Source: Oikopleura dioica (taxonomy: Eukaryota > Animalia > Chordata). From it: a stretch of DNA of 64,000 bases. How positions within the stretch are numbered: the stretch's first letter is position 1; every line of letters starts with the position of its first letter. The stretch is from positions 620,001 to 684,000 of the forward strand of contig OU015568.1 in the NCBI GenBank assembly GCA_907165135.1, read 5' to 3'. Under the pieces are notes generated by a model. The model ran no database searches. It was given only the letters and a program-made list of their open reading frames with translations, and was not told the DNA's origin. The position numbers and the translations under genes were made by a program. This document shows, piece after piece, positions 1,563-16,059 of the stretch.

Positions 1563-4049
1563 ATGCGGCTCGCGGTAAGATTCAAAAATCAAGATTTCTA
1601 AAAAATTCATTCTAGGGCCTTTTCTTGATTGGCCAAGGATTTGGTAATTCAATTGAAAATGTCACATGTTCTGCTACTTCCGAATGCGCTCAATTTTTCG
1701 CGACGTGTGAAAATATTTCGGACGGTACTGGAAATTGCCAATGTGCAAGTATCGCTTCGTTTGAGCTTGTGGAAGTTGATCCTCCTCAAGACATAGGAGG
1801 AACTCTCTACAGTCATGTCTGCAAGCAGCTTTCTCGTAAGTTCAAAACGCTTTTTCGACTTTATATTTTGATGATCTTAGCTTGCGAAAAGCTACAAATC
1901 GAGCAAGGCGAATGCCCCCTGCATTCTAATTGTAAACAAAGACAAACTGAAAGTGGCCAGATGGACGCGTTTTGCGAGTGTCATCCAGAGTTTGTTCCCT
2001 CCGACCCTTCTGCCTCCGCTGAAGTTGGGATTGACGGAGTCACCTGCGAGCGAGTAGACGTTTGCGAAGATTACGATTGCTCCAGTGTTACGAATTCAGG
2101 ATGCGTTGCTAGAGTAGACGAGCCAGAGTGCTTGTGTGAAAGCAATTTCGACTCTTTTAAAGAAGTTAATGGAACATGGGAGAAAATGATGGGGGATGAC
2201 CAGTATTTTCCGAATACGGAAATTAGTCGCAAATGTGTTGCAAAAGTTCCATGCTTTGATGTTGAATGTGGCTTCAGGCAAGTTTGTGTGAGAGAAGAAG
2301 TCAATGGTATTCCATCAGGTATTTTCTATTCAAAAGACGTTCGAAGAAAAACGATAGATGAAAAAAAAATTTATAAAAGTCGAATATAAACTTTCTCAAA
2401 AAAATGAAGAAATTAAAGAAAACACAGTATTATTCTTTCTAAAATCAAAACTAGAAAAAATCATCATCATGATTTTCAGGTATGTGTGCTTGTGAGCAAG
2501 GATACAAAGACGGTTCCAAAACATCCGTCTCTCCCGACAATAAATTGACACTTATTTGCAAGGTAGGCCTATTCTCTTAACTATTCAATGGCAAAAGCAT
2601 AGGACGTTGATGAATGCTCCAATGAGGCTCTAAACAACTGCGCAGCGGGCCAAGACTGCACCAATTCTGAAGGCTCTTTTTCGTGCTCCTGCTCTCCCGG
2701 GTGGCTTCCAAATTCTGATCCTTCAACAAATGTTCTCGTTCCGTGCATTCAGTGCTCAGGCCCTCATGCAACGGAATTCGAAGGAACTTGCACCTGCGCT
2801 GGTCCAGCCCAAATCCATGATGATGATGCCTCCATTTGCGATTGCCCCAGCTCGATGGCTTTGAGTGCTGATGGAGAAAGCTGCGTTTCGTCCTGTATTC
2901 ACGAGCATACAGTATTAGAGAATGGCCAGTGCGTTTGCGACCCGTCAAAAAATATGACATGGAATGATGATTTAGCCAGATGTGGATGCTCTCCTGGCTT
3001 TGTGGTAAATCAAAAATGGCTTCATTTATAATTAGCGTTCGAAAAAATTATAAACTGCAAAAAAATAAAAATTTATTTTAGCGATCAATCCTTGGCGACT
3101 GTCGACTTCCGGAGGAAAACTACCTATCATGGGGAAAAGCGTGGCAAGATAATTGCAAAAATGGCAAGCGCTCGCGAGCGGTTTTTTCAATCACTCCGAG
3201 TGAGACGACTTTGACCAGTGCTCAACCAAAAGGGAAGGGAAAAAGCTTTGGTTCCAAATTCTTCCGAGTTTGAAAGAAAGAATTTCGGTCGAGGAAGACT
3301 GTGGAAACTCGACTGCCAAGTGCACGGACTGGAATGCTATTTACGATGAAACAACTGGCTTTTGTCGGTGCAAAGATGGATTTTTCGACTCAAAGCAAGG
3401 CTGTATCCCGTGGACTCCATTCGAAGCAAATACAGTGATTGTCGCTGAATTAAAGAGGCGAATGGGCAGTCTTTTCAATTCAACAGAACTCGTCCATACT
3501 TTCACTCCGAAGAAAAAACAAGGAATCGACCGGTTTCTCGTGAAGACAGCTAAAAGAATGTTCGACCCTGCAAAGGAAAAAGGAAAGCTAAAAAAGAGCT
3601 GTTCGAAAAAATCTCTGATTCTTCACGGAAATGCTCCTGATGGTAAGCTGGATTATTTGCGAGATCAGAATTATTTTTTTCTTCTCTAGAAATCGAATCA
3701 ATCTTCACTGAATTCAATGTTCTGAAGAACAAGCCTGACGGAGATGTTTCCGTGGTCGAGGATCTCGCTCGGGTTTTCGATCGTTTTCAGCGACTCTACA
3801 CTTGGAACTGCCCCGAAACTGGTTACGGGAAATACCCGCTGAATCCCACGCATGAGACTGATGTTGTTTGTCAAACGAGAGAAGATCAAAAGAACTTTTT
3901 GAAATGCCAGTTGCATTACCGCTTTGACCGACTTGTCAAAGATATTGCGCCAACTAACCCTATTGATTGGTAAACTCTGAATTCAGCTGTAGGATGAATT
4001 GATCGCTCTAGAATTCTTTCTCTCTGCCTGTCTCAAAAAGAGTTCCTGA
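1563..4049 (+). CDS. Secreted multi-EGF (including Ca-binding EGF) protein with an unassigned C-terminal domain
   Basis: MRLA|GLFLIGQGFG signal peptide across a 41-nt GT-AG intron. Repeated EGF Cys patterns in ORF 1625..2389 and DVDECSNEALNNCAAGQDCTNSEGSFSCSC near 2600. Exons continue through ORFs 3270..3689 and 3752..3973; last exon uncertain. Confidence 0.8.
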
Positions 4050-5914: not shown

Positions 5915-6671
5915 TCAGTTTTGGCGAACGCCTTGTTTTTCTACGAGAGGACTGCAATGACCTTTTCCTGAGATGGGGTCTTCGTGGATTTCCTCGATCT
6001 GAGCATGATCATCATCTTCCACATGATCGTCTATGTGATCTGCGTGCTTAGAAGCTGGATTGTCAAATGCATCAACGTCGTACTCGTCGCTTTCTTCTTT
6101 TTCTCGATCATCATCTTCTCAAAGAATCAAGTGTTCATTTGATGAAATTCGAATGATTACCTTCGTCAATATATCCCTGTTCCATTTCTTCGAAATCCTT
6201 CGCGTTTTCATTTTGCTCGTCATCACACAAATCCATGTCGCAGCCATCATCATCGTCATCTTCTGCCTTTTGAGAAGTTCTACTATCGTCAACAATTTTG
6301 ACTCAAAATCGAATTATGAAAAATATCGAAAGTAAGAACTTTTCCTCTTGAATATCTTCTTCTGCTTCCGCCACTTCATTTTCGAATTCTTCATCTTCAG
6401 AATCCTCCTCTTCGTCTTCATCCTCGTCATCTGATCCTGAGCCAGATCCGTCCGACTCATCCATAAAAGCACTTCTTAGCCACCTAGCTTCCTCCTTGAT
6501 CAATTTCATTAATATTCTCTCAATTAAAAATGCTCGGAATTTAAAAATCTGTTCCTGAAGATCTCGAATTTCCGGCAGCCCAAAGCAAATGAGCAGCCAT
6601 CTGTCAAACCAAATCAATTTCTTGAGCCCTTTATCTTTCTTCGCCTTTTTGTATCTATTGAGGACTCCCAT
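5915..6671 (-). CDS. Hypothetical protein, basic N-terminus and very acidic C-terminal half
   Basis: ORF 6303..6689 continues through phase-compatible GT-AG junctions into DDREKEESDEYDVDAFDNPASKHADHIDDHVEDDD...QN*. Confidence 0.55.
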
Positions 6672-7078
6672 CTCTCTTGTTGGGAACACAATGGGTCAGT
6701 CTACCGCCTTCTTTGCAGTATCTTTTGATAGCTGAATTATTAACACGCTCTTAATTGACAATGATTTAATATTTTATATTATTTGACTTTGAAGCATAAA
6801 TAACTCGGACAAATGAAAACAAGCAAAAGTCGAAATCGACAGATCGATCAGAATAACTCTTTGTTTTTATAAAATTCTACTTTGATACTTTCAAAACTAA
6901 AAAAAAACTAGAAAAGATTAATCATGATCCCCTTTATTAAATTAAAAAATTGACAGTTTGAGTGTTAAAAAAGATAAAGATGTCGACAGTGACAGAAATG
7001 ATTTTTTGCGAAGGAGACAAGCTAAGGCTAAAATTGGAAACAAAACAAAATTTATTCGAAAAATTCTTTACTTACTCT

Positions 7079-10000
7079 TTACTTCGGGGTTAGAGTAATC
7101 GAATAAGCTTGAGGCAGGAGATACCATTTTTCTTTTTCCATGTTGAAATTTTCATTGACTAAAGCAACAGACTCATTGTTGTCTCCGTAATAAACAAAAT
7201 CCCCATAGGAGTTGTAACAATCTTCCATCATTTCGTAAGAAGCGTAGAACTCTCTTGCAAGTGGAATTCTAAGTGCAGGGCCAGAATGGTCGATTAACGT
7301 GTTTTGAAGGATGAATTCGGTGTTTTCGATTCGATCGAGCACCATTTGGTGGAAAAGTATTGAAGAGTCGGGATTTCGATAGGCGCCGGTGACTGTTAAG
7401 GGACGGGAGGAAGCGAAATTGTGGTGAAGGAGAACTTAAATTATGTGTTTTTTTATTGAAATTTGTTTGTTCATTTTTAGTTAGAGAAAACTTTTTTGAA
7501 ATAAATAGTTTTACCGCTTTCGAAATCGAGGTCGCCTGTTACATCCCAGCCGATGTTTTCTATAATTTCCCAACCACTCGTATTTAGATATGTTTTAAAT
7601 TTCATTCTTCTTAAAACCATATCAATATTGCTTGCTTGAAATTCTTGTTCCGTTTTTTTCGGATTAAGATTGAAGCCAGCGAAACTTCGCGGGTAAACTA
7701 TCATTGTCAGATGAGTAAAGATGGTTTCAAGCGTGTAGTTCCTTTCCATCTTTGACTTTTCAACTTTCAAATCATTTCTGATTGCCCATCTCAAAAGAAC
7801 GGAAACTGAAACGGGAACGCAAAGATTGCTCTCTTTTTGGTTTAAAACATTCTTCGTCAAGTTTTTGAATTCTAAGTGAATCTGTCTTGTCAATTTTTGT
7901 TTAAGATGAGCCATTAGAGAAGACTTCGTTAAATTATGGTCGTTAAGACAGAAATCAGAAGTCGCGTTTTTAAAGAAATTGTTTTAGATAAGCTCTGGAT
8001 TTGGTTTAGTGATGGAGTTTTCTTCTTTCCAAGCCACTCCGCATTAAAAACCTTTAAAATATTTAACGACAACGATAAACGAAGGAATGAACCTTTAACT
8101 CATGTTGAATAGCTTTTCTCTCGACTTCTTCGATCGGCTTGAATAAGAGACTCCAGGCTGTTTTCCAATCGCAGAGAATTCAAATGTGGAGTTCTGATGG
8201 ATACCCTCCACCTCTTCCACAAAGTTGTTCGCTGTCCGAAAAAGCAGCGGTGCCGGCATCTATAGAAAATTGAAAAAGAAATATTTAATTCTGAAATCCA
8301 AAGGGGGCGACGAGAATCGGGATTTTCGTGAGAAAAATGAGGAAAAACCGGCTTTGATAGGAGAATTATGACTTATCGATTTTAAACCTTCTATCTACAA
8401 TTTAAGGCCGGAACGCATGAAATAGATTTTTCCCGGAGCGCATATCGACCCATTTTTGGGTGAGAGGCCGTAGACACGTTTTCTTGCTTACATCAACCCA
8501 AATTTTATCATAAATTAGATCTTCAGACAATAAACTGCAAGAACAGATACATAAAAATCTCTCATCTGTTGTTCAAACACTACAAAATGATGATTTCTGA
8601 AGGCATATTTCAGCGCCTTACCCAAAAATGGGTCGATATGCGTTCCGGCGTTAAGGGGTCCCCCACGATTTTTAGATTTTTCGAATTCTAGATTTTTCTC
8701 TTCAGATTTGAATTCCTCATGCAAAAAGCTGCAAAAAAGGTCTCTAGCTTTTTTCGATTGTTTTAGAAAAAAGTGTCCAAAATTGACCTTGAAGTGGCCA
8801 ATTTTGATGTATTTGCATAGAGATTTTAAAATCAACCCTTATTTACAGTTGTCTAAAGTACGAATATGGTACATTTTTAGAAAGGCTATGAGCTCAGCTT
8901 TCTATTTATGCGCGAAAATATGGGTTTGGGTGATGCCCGGAAGGCAATTCGCATGGTTGAAATTTCAAAAATCGTACATTATTTTGATCGTCTTCGTTAC
9001 ATTATCATTTTTTGGAATTTGAAAAAACTGAGATACGCTTCACTAGATTAGCGTTAGACCTTTCAAAAACCACAGGAAAAAATAAATTGTTTCCTAAATT
9101 TTTGGAGTAAATCTCGTTCAAAATGTACCCAAAAACGCGATTTTGCGCGAGATGGTTACCTTCTCGGCGCTCTAGCGCCGAATGTGATTGGATTAAAAAA
9201 ATTTGAGACACGCTTCACTAGATCTAAGAATGATCTAGTTTTACGAAAAAAATTTTGAAAAATCTAAGTCCGTGACACCGTGAGCGCCGTTTGAAAATGG
9301 CTTATTTCGGGACCCCCTTAAGGATGCCCGATTTAAACAATGAGGCTCATTGAATGAGCTTTAGTTGTTCAACATTTTGTTTTATCCAAGTCAAAACTTA
9401 CATAAATATTTTCGAACTCTATATCTGTTTCCTCTCCTCGCATATCCCATTTTTCGATAGCTCCAGCTTCCTGTCGTTTCATTTATATTTCCAAAATCTA
9501 TCCACTTGGCTTCTCCATCTTTCAGCAAAATATTCTCCGGCTTCTTGTCATAATGCTGGATTCCAATGTGATCCAAATACTGTCTTCCCTTTTCAACACC
9601 GATCGCTATTTTCTTCCGCTCGTCCAAAGTCAAATCTTCTTTTTTCAGTCTGCTTCTCAAATCTGAGTCGCATTTCTCCATGATGGTAATCCAACCGAGG
9701 CATTCTTGTCTCTTCTTGCTCCAATAAATTTCGATGTTGCAGAAATTTTTGATGACGTTTGGATGAATTGGGATAACAGGTACGGAAAATGTTTCCGTTT
9801 TTTCTGCTTTATTGAAGTCTAAAAGAAAAAGCTTAAAATTTATTAAATAATATTGTGCATCCGGGGCCAAGGGACAAAAATCTCTAGAAATCGACTGCCT
9901 GAATGCACTGCCGCTTCTCAATAGACAGGTAAAATAGGTGGTGGCCTGAAACGTCGTCCAGTTGCTGCATGTGCGGCCTAAAACGTCTCTCCTGTTCCTG

Positions 10001-11382
10001 CATGTGAAGGCCTCAATCGTCTTTCCTGTTCCTGCATGTGTTGCTCAAAACGTCTTTCCTGTTGCTGCATGTGTTGCCTAAAACGTCTTTTGGGCCCCCT
10101 AGGCTAATATCTGTTTTCCTGTCTCATCGTTACGTAAGAAGCCGAGTCATCGTCGAGGCTAGCTATTACTGCTATTATTGGGCTGTTAGGCGACGTGGCT
10201 TTACCAACCATCTCTCGACTCACTCATTCATTTAGCCTAGGCGCCCTAAAGACGTTTTAGGCAACACATGCAGCAACAGGAAAGACGTTTTGAGCAACAC
10301 ATGCAGGAACAGGAAAGACGATTGAGGCCTACACATGCAGGAACAGGAGAGACGTTTTAGGCCGCACATGCAGCAACTGGACGACGTTTTAGGCCACCAC
10401 CAATTTTATTTTTAAGGGGGCCCGGAGAACTTTCGAACAAAAGGTATTACCCGTGATCCGAGAGGGATGAATAGGGACTCATTGGAAAGCCCGTCTATCG
10501 AACTGTTCCAAAAAATTCGACGAAACTATCGGACCAGCAGGAGCGCTGTATCACCCGGTTTTCCATCAGCATGTCGCCTCTCGCGCGCCGCTTTTGCGCC
10601 ATTTTTCAATCAAACCGTAATTCATCCCTTTACGATCAAGGGAAGTATTTTTTTGACAATTTCTCCGGGCCCCCTTTAAAACCTGTCATAGAGGATTACG
10701 CAATGTATTTCGAGCCGTCTCACAGGGTTACATCAGCATTACCTTTGGAAAGATGAATATAAAATTCTAATTCTTTTTCTTCTACAAACAGTGCTGAGTC
10801 AAATGCCTGAACCCTAACAGCAACTTCCAAATCTCCAAATTTTTCTTCAAAAACAATAGCTTCTCCTCCAGTTGAAATCATTTTCTCTTGAATTGACTCG
10901 TCGAGAATTCACTCACCATTTTCTTCTTTTAATTCAGAACGACAAATTTTTCGTTTCTTTAAATTCGGATTTTTGTTGAGAATCATCTTTTGGAAGGAAG
11001 TCATCGTCCATGTTCTTTCGCTTGGGAATTTTTCTGGAAAATTCTGGAATGGAATTTTTCAGAATTTTTCCTTTTCCGTTTTCAAATATAATCTCCTGCC
11101 ATCCACAAGAATCGTCTTCTTCAAATTCTGTTCTCTCGACGGACAAAATCAACCTATCCAAATCATCTCTGCTCGTTGTTCTCCTCACTTTCTTTTTAAA
11201 ATCCTCAAGCCATTTTTTAATTGCTTCTTTCGTCAACTCTATTGGATGCGTCAAAACACGATTTTTCCGGAAAATATTGTCAAAGATTTTTTCATAGTTT
11301 TTCAGTAGTGTTGTTTAAATAAATTTCCTAAAAGTATGTTCAAGCGTTTTTTCAATCTCGCATGATCATAAACATGATTCAT
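7079..11382 (-). CDS. Protein kinase-like domain fused to a C-terminal papain-like cysteine protease domain; two in-frame TGA codons and homopolymer shifts (possible pseudogene); start codon uncertain
   Basis: Kinase motifs ISTGGEAIVF, VAVRVQ, HYDKKPEN, WIDFG and YAGTAAF across exons (about 10900-10743, 9818-9403, 8260-8098). The frame continues into ORF 7477..7914 with NQKESNLCVPVS (Gln/Cys) and ORF 7079..7345 with FHQMVL...FILQNT (His/Asn). Confidence 0.75.
8655..9317. mobile_element. Non-autonomous TIR element with TTAA flanks and GG termini (Kolobok-like MITE), intronic
   Basis: TTAA|GGGGTCCC at 8651 and GGGACCCCC|TTAA ending 9321. Confidence 0.55.
9937..10401. mobile_element. Foldback element, about 175-bp arms built from 30-bp subrepeats, inside a kinase intron
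   Basis: GGTGGTGGCCTGAAACGTCGTCC... mirrors ...GGACGACGTTTTAGGCCACCACC; about 115-bp spacer. Confidence 0.8.
10416..10674. mobile_element. MITE with GGGGGCCCGGAGAA TIRs and TTAA-like flanks
   Basis: TTAA GGGGGCCCGGAGAA at 10412 and TTCTCCGGGCCCCC T TTAA at 10661-10679. Confidence 0.65.
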
Positions 11383-11708
11383 AAACAAGAAAGGCCGATC
11401 TCGCGACTCCGTATTTACGATTATTTTTAACCTTACGACGAGAAACGAGAATTTCCCCTACGACGACAATGTGTCGTATATGACACAATTTCAATGCATT
11501 CGTGTGTCATATACGACACACAAGTAGCGAAGCGAAATTCGCTTTTCTCATGCATTTGTAGCGAAGCAGCGCCCATTAAGTTGATACCAAGTGAAAGCTA
11601 AGCGAAAAGTAGGGGCATAAAGGGGGTCAGCGAAATTCTCAGACCAAGTTACAAATGAGTTACGGGCGTTTGAAACTCCTGGTGTCATATATGACCGACA
11701 GTACTGAA

Positions 11709-11763
11709 AATGTAACGAATGTCACGAATGTCACGAATGTAACGAATGTCACGAATGTCACGA
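11709..11763. repeat. 9-bp tandem repeat (AATGTMACG) x6
   Basis: Read directly from the sequence. Confidence 0.85.
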
Positions 11764-13639: not shown

Positions 13640-14901
13640 CTCTTCAAATCTTCATCCTTGGGCGCCGAAAAAGGGAGGAAAATGCTAAGCCACTTGGTGG
13701 AACGCGCTTTTTCGAAAAATTAATAATCGTCCGTCGCCAGGCTGTGCGCTCCGAGTAATGGGCCCGCGGGCGCACCAAATGTTCGAAAAAGGCTCAATTG
13801 CCGTGTCAGACGGACTCGGTGGCGCTCTAGAATCGAGAGCCAGGGATGAGCCGTACAAGGGGCTCAGGAAGCCGATTGTTTAATTCAAGTGCTGGACCAA
13901 TCGGATGGCAAAAAGTACCGAGCTTCAAAAGTAGTCAAAAAGTACTGTATGCGCATTTCTGAAGGGATTTATTTTTCTAGGGAGAAAAACAAAGAAACAC
14001 CATAAATGATCTTAATCGTAATGGAAACTGATTTTTTAAATGAAAATCCGGATTAGTATTACTCTAAAACCATAGTTCATTTTCCTTCATACTATGGCTT
14101 AAGGTAATACATTTTTATACTTAACTTCACAGAAAAGCCAGTCATTTCGCCAAAAATGAAGGATTAAGTGAAAAAATCACCCAACTTCAAGATTTTGTTT
14201 TCTTTTTGGGAACGAAGTTTGAAAAATCATATTTTTTATTTTGTAATTTGATTAAAAAACCATAATGGATTTCAAAAGCGGACAGAACTGGATTTATTCA
14301 AATAGAAAAATTGCTGATCCTCTTCAGCAAAAATTTTTCTGCGAGTAAGTTTAGTAACCGAATCGAATATTATAATATATAGGTATATAATATATTAGGT
14401 ATATACCTAATATTATTTTAATATTATATATAACCGAAATTTATTTATATTGATTTTCAGAGTTCAAAAAACGCGCGAAAAAGAAGTTCAAAGACCTTCA
14501 AAAAGGTTTTCAGAAATCATAAAAATGACAGGCCGCGCCGCTATCAAGATCATCATTACCAGGGTGTCAAATCGCGGGGGATCGAGAAGGGATCGCGCGC
14601 CACCGCCCACGCTCGATCCCAAGTCTGAAGGGATCGCTCGCGCGCTTTTTGAACGGAAAGGGATCGCGGTGAAAATAGCAGAGCAAACGCGCGGGCTAGC
14701 GCCAGGCTTCATGCGTGGAATTTTCTCCGATCAAGCTCGCGCCGCTTTTCAAAAACTCAGAACTCTTCGTTATTGTCTCAAATTTTATGAATTTTTCAGA
14801 TCTAGTGTAGTTTTTCTCCTCTTTTTCTGATTAAAATTAAACTCATGTTCAAATTAAGTTTAATAAGTTTGTCTGATTATATTATTTAAAAAAGAAAGAA
14901 A

Positions 14902-16059
14902 TTACATCATTGTCTGTCGACAAAAGGGACAGCGGAAATGAGGAGGAAGGCTTCTTTTGTGACACGCCAAGCACATTGGTGGACACTTTTCGCATTGAGC
15001 AGCAGCAAATACTTTTTGACAGTCATCTCGACCAATGGGACTAAATAATATGTTAAAATGTGAATATTGATACTCTTCCCCTTAAATTTACCACCTAGGG
15101 TCGGACCCCTTACTTAGGTTTCCTTAGTTACTAAGGGTAAGGGTTTTGAAATTGATGAATCTGATGATCTCTGAAAACTCAGAAAGGAACTATGGAAAGG
15201 ATTTTTTTCCGCCGAAACCCGAAAAAGGGTAAGTAAAGCATCCTTACCTTACTAAGGAAAGGACCCTTAGAAAGCAAAAAATTAAGGAAGGAAGTCCGAC
15301 CCTAGCTTACCACTCCATTGGATCAGCGGGAATAAGAAGAACGGGAGGATCAATTTGGAGAGGATCATCTCCATATATTTGTAAGACAAATATATTCAAT
15401 AAACGAAGTCGAAAATGATTTCGAGATGCCGCGGCACGCTTTCGAGTCGTGAAGACGTGTTTTTTAAGCATCTTTTTATCATTTTTTGCTTTTTAGAGAG
15501 TTTTGAATTTGATAAACCTACCGATATAAGAAACATTGGCAGGAAGCGTTGATATGCGATTATTCACCAAATGGTTGATCAAAAACAGCAACGGCTCTTT
15601 TCACGCGTTTCATTGTGAAAAGTAACTTCTCTTTGAATATTTTTTTTATTATGAAACTCTTGCTTTAGACTTTAAGATTGAATTAACTTCAATCAAGCGA
15701 GACTTAGATCTATTCATATTATCCACGAATGTTGCTCGAATCTTCGATCTACCCGGGTCGTTCTCATCAATTTCAAGAGATCTTTTATTTGTTTGATAAT
15801 TTCTGTGCATGGAATAACGAGAGTGCTAGGGTTTCGCAAAAAAGCGAATTGGCACTGCGAATTTAGACCCCTGTTCAAACATTTTCCTGAGAAAAGTTAT
15901 TTTTTCTGATGAAATAACGCACTTGGTTACATAATTGACTCGATCAGATGGTCGTATTTCCGCATGGTAATGAGAAAAGTGCCAGTCTAATGTTTGTGGC
16001 TTCACAGATTTCAAACAAATCGTGCACGCCATGGGGAACTTCCAAGCCTTTCTTGTCAT
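14902..16059 (-). CDS. Transposon-borne accessory gene: N-terminal C2H2-like finger, C-terminal RING-like domain
   Basis: Exon 1 CTICLKSVKPQTLDWHFSHYH. The last exon, joined by TG|GTAAG...TTAG|T, gives MECPIGRDDCQKVFAAAQCEKCPPMCLACHKRSLPPHFRCPFCRQTMM*. Middle exons have plausible short introns but those junctions are less certain. Confidence 0.7.
15095..15305. mobile_element. Small MITE (CTAGGGTCGGAC TIRs) nested in the last intron of the accessory gene
   Basis: TIRs at 15095-15106 and 15294-15305; flanks TTTACCAC and CTTACCAC (7/8 match, putative TSD). Confidence 0.7.

Follow-up and report, generated by a model that had tools for sequence, protein, structure and literature searches.

The question raised by a locus in Oikopleura dioica is whether a protein kinase and a papain-like cysteine protease are joined there on one chain, as a reading of the DNA letters (hereafter the original prediction) had proposed. 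The locus occupies 7079-11314 on the minus strand of the window, which is the whole stretch of AT-rich animal DNA analyzed (64,000 nucleotides (nt), positions 620,001 to 684,000 of contig OU015568.1). It is one copy of a large, unstudied gene family that combines a kinase with a papain-type protease, and this copy is a probable recent pseudogene of that real and undescribed family. We are fairly confident that the locus is a member, decayed and probably without function, of an Oikopleura family in which an N-terminal domain, a kinase, a linker and a papain-fold domain form a single chain. The window was searched exon by exon, while both folds were computed for database paralogues (the C-terminal domain of P0141, and P0123 at full length).

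All of the motifs on which the proposal was based are present on the minus strand, in the order kinase, Gln-x5-Cys, His and Asn: STGGEA (Gly loop, 10858-10875), VAVR (beta-3 strand, 10813-10824), HYDKKPEN (catalytic loop, 9532-9555), DFG (9490-9498), NQKESNLC (Gln-x5-Cys, 7819-7842), FHQMVL (His, 7337-7354) and FILQNT (Asn, 7298-7315). This order is not due to chance, because exon C matches the Pfam kinase model and exon E obtained 105 relatives in a word search, with expectation values (E) down to 1e-55. The gene consists of six open stretches, which are collinear with the paralogues (N-domain, kinase, C-domain) at 40-70% identity. No further paralogues were found in the rest of the 64-kb window.

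How widely the two domains are joined was determined from the relatives. A profile of ten complete C-domains retrieved 183 cluster representatives with E up to 1e-3 among 1.84 billion; these represent clusters at 50% identity, and the family comprises at least 183 such clusters. The named relatives come exclusively from O. dioica, and the rest are short marine-metagenome contigs, including those of Tara Oceans. In O. dioica locus L002 (FN654742), two tandem paralogues of ~2.2 kb each have the same piece order, and one open reading frame (ORF) of 381 residues spans the N-domain through DFG. All parts are held by O. dioica database proteins of 634-638 residues, and in the metagenomic ORFs P0219 (449 residues) and P0257 (410 residues) the kinase C-lobe continues without interruption into the protease domain. 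Additionally, an ORF matching Pkinase lies directly upstream of a protease-domain ORF in locus L003. Because single ORFs cross the domain border and the same order recurs in tandem paralogues, the fusion is independent of splicing models, and kinase and protease occur on one chain family-wide. The fusion proposed by the original prediction thus stands for the family, but not for the window locus, which has stop codons and no RNA support. The impression that the architecture was unfamiliar was also borne out: kinases and papain-fold proteases are each well known, while a single chain joining both was described nowhere in the literature we searched, and the kinase belongs to no recognized group.

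Two further observations concern the family at large. In O. dioica FN653098 (L001), three matches to exon F (8417-8830, 9598-10005 and 14633-15046) were found along with one match to exon E, which suggests that family members there were partly duplicated or are present as fragments. The proteins closest to the N-terminal piece of the window copy (P0131, P0149, P0133 and P0129) begin with a hydrophobic stretch (MLEFSILAILATCIAGMIQVA...) that resembles a signal anchor, while other members start with MLTEF..., so that some family members, judging from these letters, may be membrane-tethered.

Is the first of the two domains a kinase? Exon C (9402..9818), which carries the hinge, HYDKKPEN, DFG and the start of the activation segment and is 50-55% identical to the paralogues, matched Pfam Pkinase (PF00069) above the gathering threshold (37.4 bits, cut-off 31.7, E = 2.4e-9), the sole family match obtained when each exon was compared with Pfam and NCBIfam. 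With this score, and with both the HxD..N loop and DFG present, it groups with the eukaryotic protein kinases (ePKs). It departs from the canonical kinase in lacking the beta-3 Lys (VAIK) and the GxGxxG loop, in place of which the window has VAVR and STGGEA. The kinase region of the paralogues matched kinases in PDB by sequence from hinge to DFG only (E ~1e-5), including a Plasmodium MAP kinase-like phosphotransferase, CDK9, MKK7, TTK and PLK4. The model of the 638-residue paralogue P0123 (predicted local distance difference test (pLDDT) 83.9, predicted template modelling score (pTM) 0.84) matched CDK9, PKR, GSK3 and ERK2 in Foldseek (E ~6e-6, prob 1.0).

The catalytic Asp, the Lys two residues on and the Asn are each kept in 40/40 relatives, and the DFG Asp and Gly each in 42/42. 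The beta-3 Arg is equally invariant (41/41), and in the GGEA loop each Gly position is kept in 39/40 and both E and A in 40/40. No long helix between beta-3 and hinge (alpha-C) was seen in the P0123 model by DSSP. We conclude that the domain is genuinely of the ePK type, with the catalytic loop intact and the side that anchors ATP non-canonical; from its residues, it may be either an atypical kinase or a pseudokinase.

The second domain could not be recognized by sequence searches. Exons E and F matched no Pfam peptidase family at E up to 1, the protease exons had no match in an exon-by-exon NCBIfam search, and P0141 and P0123, searched as full paralogues, had no Pfam peptidase family at E up to 0.01; neither the exons nor the paralogues reached the gathering thresholds of Peptidase_C1, C39 or C39_2. 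Similarly, neither exon E, exon F nor the family profile A4 had a match among PDB sequences at E up to 10. The fold was therefore judged from structure. The C-domain of P0141 (380-634), folded with an 84-row alignment, gave a pLDDT of 79.1 and a pTM of 0.79. Foldseek returned nothing below E 0.001 (best 0.045) for this model, and its best-ranked rows were mostly papain-like peptidases. As Foldseek gave no match below E 0.001, we relied on VIA-align, in which the top 50 of 50 matches among 48,161 chains were papain-like cysteine peptidases (Z 9.6 to 5.5). They included Der p 1, xylellain and Der f 1 (Z 9.6), cathepsin B (Z 9.1), C39 domains (Z 8.0-8.4), ATG4A (Z 8.1), staphopain C (Z 8.0) and UfSP (Z 6.0-7.5). 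Because best Z values of 7-8 are common among unrelated models, the fold call rests on the uniformity of this list and not on Z alone. The ESM Atlas neighbours by shape were clusters of C39_2, C1, C10 and phytochelatin synthase, with template modelling (TM) scores of 0.42-0.55.

In the P0141 C-domain model, Gln9 precedes Cys15, which starts a helix (15-32), His150 lies within a strand (147-158) and Asn168 is just past another strand (163-167); in the full-length P0123 model, Cys412 likewise starts a helix (412-429). As modelled, and judged by the positions of secondary-structure elements, this order of Cys-helix, His-strand and Asn is the papain arrangement. Among relatives covering each column, Gln is kept in 157/159, Cys in 157/160, His in 85/89 and Asn in 101/110, and a divergent relative, P0284, reads HAV...FVIKNS, which is near the classical papain signature. 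At the family level, the predicted paralogue fold and the conservation of the four residues in 92-99% of relatives support a papain-type C-terminal domain, and the beta-3 Arg is conserved alongside them.

When language-model clusters were compared, those nearest to P0141:380-625 were hypothetical proteins of giant viruses (Nucleocytoviricota; score 0.82), one of which contains Peptidase_C70 in 15% of its members. A viral origin was considered and rejected, as this Atlas neighbour score is at chance level and a scan of IMG/VR gave no relative.

A papain fold need not be a protease. The C-domain might instead be a transferase, an isopeptidase or a binding module, with phytochelatin synthase and the enzymes specific for ubiquitin-like proteins (UBLs) as its models, and the kinase a pseudokinase scaffold. 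The structural matches do include phytochelatin synthase, ATG4A, UfSP, ZUFSP and CD lyase at Z 6-8, and the invariant beta-3 Arg, the odd Gly loop and the lack of a long alpha-C helix in the model would suit a pseudokinase. However, the near-invariant Gln, Cys, His and Asn argue for some catalysis, and the invariant Asp, Lys and Asn of the catalytic loop together with the DFG Asp argue for selection on the kinase site. We regard this alternative as possible, if somewhat doubtful. Because both sets of catalytic residues are conserved among members only 30-60% identical, the family likely does chemistry and not scaffolding.

Does the window copy itself encode such a protein? The N-terminal domain is coded at 11027..11314 (…AIKKWLEDF…SVERTEFEEDD…; tblastn with paralogues P0131, P0124 and P0149), and the second frame of this first coding block (B, 10743..11004) contains TSFQK, STGGEA and VAVR, with the donor G/GTAATG after 10743. 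A GT..AG intron of 924 nt with repeat insertions (9819..10742) leads to exon C, where the corresponding gap in paralogue locus L002 is only ~34 nt. A second GT..AG intron of 1142 nt, made of repetitive DNA (8260..9401), precedes kinase exon D (8093..8259), whose homologous frame, established by tblastn against the paralogues (AGTAAF…CDWKTAWSLLFKPIEEVERK), has AGTAAF at 8240-8257 and CDWKTAW at 8153-8173. The middle exon of the original prediction (MPAPLL..., 8098-8259) was read in the wrong frame, since the paralogues align to this other one. After a GT..AG intron of 41 nt (8052..8092), exon E (7515..8051) encodes the linker and the helical half of the papain-fold domain (NQKESNLC, YPRS.AG.NLNP, GWEII). 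A phase 1 GT..AG intron of 122 nt (7393..7514) lies inside the protease domain and its joint yields the paralogue sequence ...FES/VTGAY.... Exon F (7079..7392) encodes the beta half (FHQMVL, FILQNT) and the C-terminal WYLLPQAY, and ends with the stop TAA at 7079-7081. The joints 10743/9818, 9402/8259, 8093/8051 and 7515/7392 all have GT..AG ends, with phases that recreate the paralogue sequence.

Along these exons, however, the locus has neither a start codon nor an uninterrupted frame, so that the phase-compatible chain of exons claimed from the letters did not hold. Five lesions were detected. An in-frame TGA (10909-10911) replaces the Trp (G.WKL) present in 39/39 relatives, and a second in-frame TGA (8180-8182) interrupts the kinase C-lobe directly before the conserved CDW motif (...SELHI*ILCDW...); both fall in ungapped alignments to paralogue coding sequence. 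The frame changes between ~11027 and 11004 and slips again at a run of five A (7967-7971) in exon E. Furthermore, no in-frame ATG exists from the upstream TAA (11315-11317) to the conserved N-terminal residues. Translation from ATG 11382 through a 46-nt GT..AG intron was rejected, as it reads into a stop; a joint to ...LTKEAIKKW is phase-compatible, if with a poor acceptor. Also rejected was a micro-intron beginning at GTGAGT, by which the first TGA would be spliced out, because the 32-nt candidate disrupts the frame and this part of the locus can be aligned to coding residues gap-free.

The window copy departs from the family at 3/53 conserved kinase columns and 0/19 conserved protease columns, where the median relative departs at 0, and it reads AGTAAF where 13/13 aligned paralogues read AGTPGF. 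Since its conserved residues are near normal, the death of this copy is suggested to be recent; as a rough estimate, the divergence at conserved columns is about that of the neutral drift that comes with two nonsense hits, which fits a recent death.

The contigs of two O. dioica DNA runs (X1 and X2) bear on whether the lesions are real. They show zero substitutions over the unique parts of the locus, including 10454-11367, and the X2 contig matches the window letter for letter over 8081-8280 (200 nt; 0 other letters, 0 gaps), which confirms the TGA at 8180-8182 from an independent source. Several points weigh against the pseudogene reading. The contigs of X1 and X2, which agree mutually and differ from the window by small insertions or deletions (indels) only, are longer than it by 8 letters within 10454-11367, by 2 within 7918-8421 and by one T after 9639. 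These indels look like either homopolymer-type assembly error or a shared allele and affect any frame-based reading, so that both frame changes and the missing start may be assembly-related or allelic. In addition, the protease exons keep every conserved residue (0/19 mismatches) and an in-frame Met (MAHLKQ...), from which a shorter product could start; the fold evidence comes from paralogues ~46-50% identical to the window copy; and absent reads are weak evidence in the RNA runs described below, which come from an unspecified strain.

With these points in mind, the locus could be an intact, expressed full-length fusion, with the lesions explained by assembly errors or by Oikopleura introns of an unusual kind (non-canonical or very short). 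The contig indels fall exactly in the regions of frame change, nearly all conserved residues are retained and GTGAGT overlaps the first TGA, all of which would fit such a gene. It is nevertheless very improbable, given that the second TGA is identical in the independent contig, that both TGAs lie inside ungapped alignments to coding sequence, that cutting the 32-nt GT..AG stretch at the first TGA wrecks the frame of the Gly loop, and that no RNA support was obtained in runs X11 and X12. In these two poly-A RNA runs (~1.5-1.8 Gb read each), no expression of the locus was found: the only reads were 1-2 partial ones with 90-95% likeness, and paralogues are their probable source; the transcript support that the original prediction had hoped for was thus not obtained.

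The same reads bear on a shorter product, for instance a protease encoded from the Met of MAHLKQ... in exon E through exon F. The absence of mismatches in exons E and F, with Gln, Cys, His and Asn intact, is consistent with it, as are two 253-residue database models (P0055 and P0057) that begin at the equivalent Met. Yet kinase exons of the same orientation lie immediately upstream of these models, which look like truncated annotations, the few RNA reads are probably those of paralogues, and neither promoter nor trans-splice evidence was seen. We therefore consider a shorter product unlikely, and a probable recent pseudogene remains our reading of the window copy.

For intact members, the following picture can be drawn. 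The chain has ~560-660 residues in four parts: an N-terminal alpha/beta domain of ~100 residues; a very divergent eukaryotic-type kinase with catalytic Asp, Lys, Asn and DFG Asp kept and always with beta-3 Arg and GGEA; a short flexible linker, which corresponds to the low-confidence residues 386-405 of the P0123 model; and a cysteine hydrolase of very divergent papain fold (clan CA-like) that has Gln-x5-Cys, His and Asn. Intact members would be cytosolic two-enzyme proteins, in which the Cys/His pair may cleave a peptide or isopeptide bond and the kinase-like part may bind nucleotide. The pTM of P0123 over its 638 residues suggests a fixed packing of the domains, as far as a model can tell. 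The window copy would not make the full chain, because translation would stop at the first TGA in the kinase N-lobe or at the second in the C-lobe, before the protease. The role of signalling or defence effector given in the original prediction is likewise putative. Coupling between the two sites (the gating that had been proposed), self-cleavage and an immune or conflict role of the family are speculation; the family's size, tandem arrangement, fast divergence and dead members agree with such a role and do not show it.

What, then, is new at this locus? The domains are of known kinds, their fusion is new, and the window locus is an ordinary pseudogene of the family. A more far-reaching interpretation is an undescribed class, in which an Arg-for-Lys kinase is mechanically coupled to a new papain-fold protease, for example through phosphorylation-controlled or self-cleaving activation, within an immune-like birth-death family of which this locus has freshly died. 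Its range so far would be Oikopleura and unassigned marine DNA, and we put it forward only tentatively, as rather improbable. All named members come from one fast-evolving chordate, and the invariant beta-3 Arg provides an unusual natural experiment for kinase biochemistry. The window copy shows that the family loses members and that repeats can swell two introns where a paralogue has short inter-exon gaps, and it is a warning that a motif-level reading can miss stop codons.

The repeats in both long introns are reflected in contig depth, which is many times the unique level (250-1760 in intron 8260-9401, compared with ~35-45 for unique parts). The first intron contains a palindromic element (9930-10408) resembling a miniature inverted-repeat transposable element, with arms of 169 nt that are 97% complementary, 141 nt between the arms and internal sub-repeats of ~33 nt; it is a repeated element, as its contig depth is several times the unique level. 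It is abutted by a second small element (10409-10681) with 34-nt terminal inverted repeats (TTTTTAAGGGGGCCCGGAGAA... / ...TTCTCCGGGCCCCCTTTAAAA). The second intron has an inverted repeat (8433-8464 / 8617-8648), and a piece of 101 nt (8483-8583) is missing from contigs of both DNA runs, which means that some copies contain it and others do not. Just upstream of the gene, a hexamer tandem repeat (11690-11760) gives the plus-strand translation VTNVTNVTNVT. Elsewhere, ORFs that are rich in Cys and look EGF-like, from a neighbouring gene for an extracellular protein (1625-3689, plus strand), and a strongly acidic ORF (6303-6689, minus strand) are apparently unrelated to the fusion gene.

Among known systems, the best structural matches of the C-domain are the papain C1 peptidases (Der p 1/Der f 1, cathepsin B and caricain; Z 9.6-8.7), with alignments of 150-165 residues at a root mean square deviation of 3.4-4.2 and an identity of only 9-15%. 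In both, Gln is followed by Cys at the start of a helix, then by His and, one hairpin on, by Asn. In contrast to the C1 peptidases, the family domain has no detectable similarity to Pfam or PDB sequences, shows no propeptide in the alignments and no secretory signal (judged by eye only), and sits behind a fused kinase. The C39 bacteriocin-processing domains (PCAT1, ComA) and C39-like domains share the minimal papain fold and Gln-x5-Cys, and gave the best Foldseek match (E 0.045), Z of 8.0-8.4 and Atlas TM scores of 0.42-0.50. Like the family domain, they form one domain of a larger multi-domain protein. However, those are bacterial domains attached to ABC transporters, while the family domain is animal and kinase-linked, ~100 residues longer and unmatched by Pfam models. 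The cytosolic UBL-specific proteases ATG4A, UfSP1/2 and ZUFSP have the same fold (Z 6.0-8.1) and are intracellular enzymes that lack a signal peptide, as would be expected of a domain fused to a kinase. They differ from the family in having no sequence relation to it and in their catalytic arrangements and substrate-binding inserts, and no UBL-binding element was identified in the family domain.

For the kinase, the best PDB matches are spread over CDK9, MKK7, TTK, PLK4, PKR and GSK3 (E ~1e-5). Eukaryotic protein kinases without the beta-3 Lys exist, WNK being an example, and with these and the pseudokinases the family shares the ePK fold and HxDxK..N/DFG with the canonical Lys gone. It differs from them in its invariant Arg, its GGEA loop and the missing long alpha-C helix of the model. 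Two systems, to our knowledge without homology to the kinase-papain-fold family, offer functional analogies only: PAN2-PAN3 combines a pseudo-USP (ubiquitin-specific protease) with a pseudokinase, and in AvrPphB-PBS1 a papain-like protease acts on a kinase. In both, a papain-clan or USP-type domain and a kinase-type domain are brought together in one functional unit from separate polypeptides.

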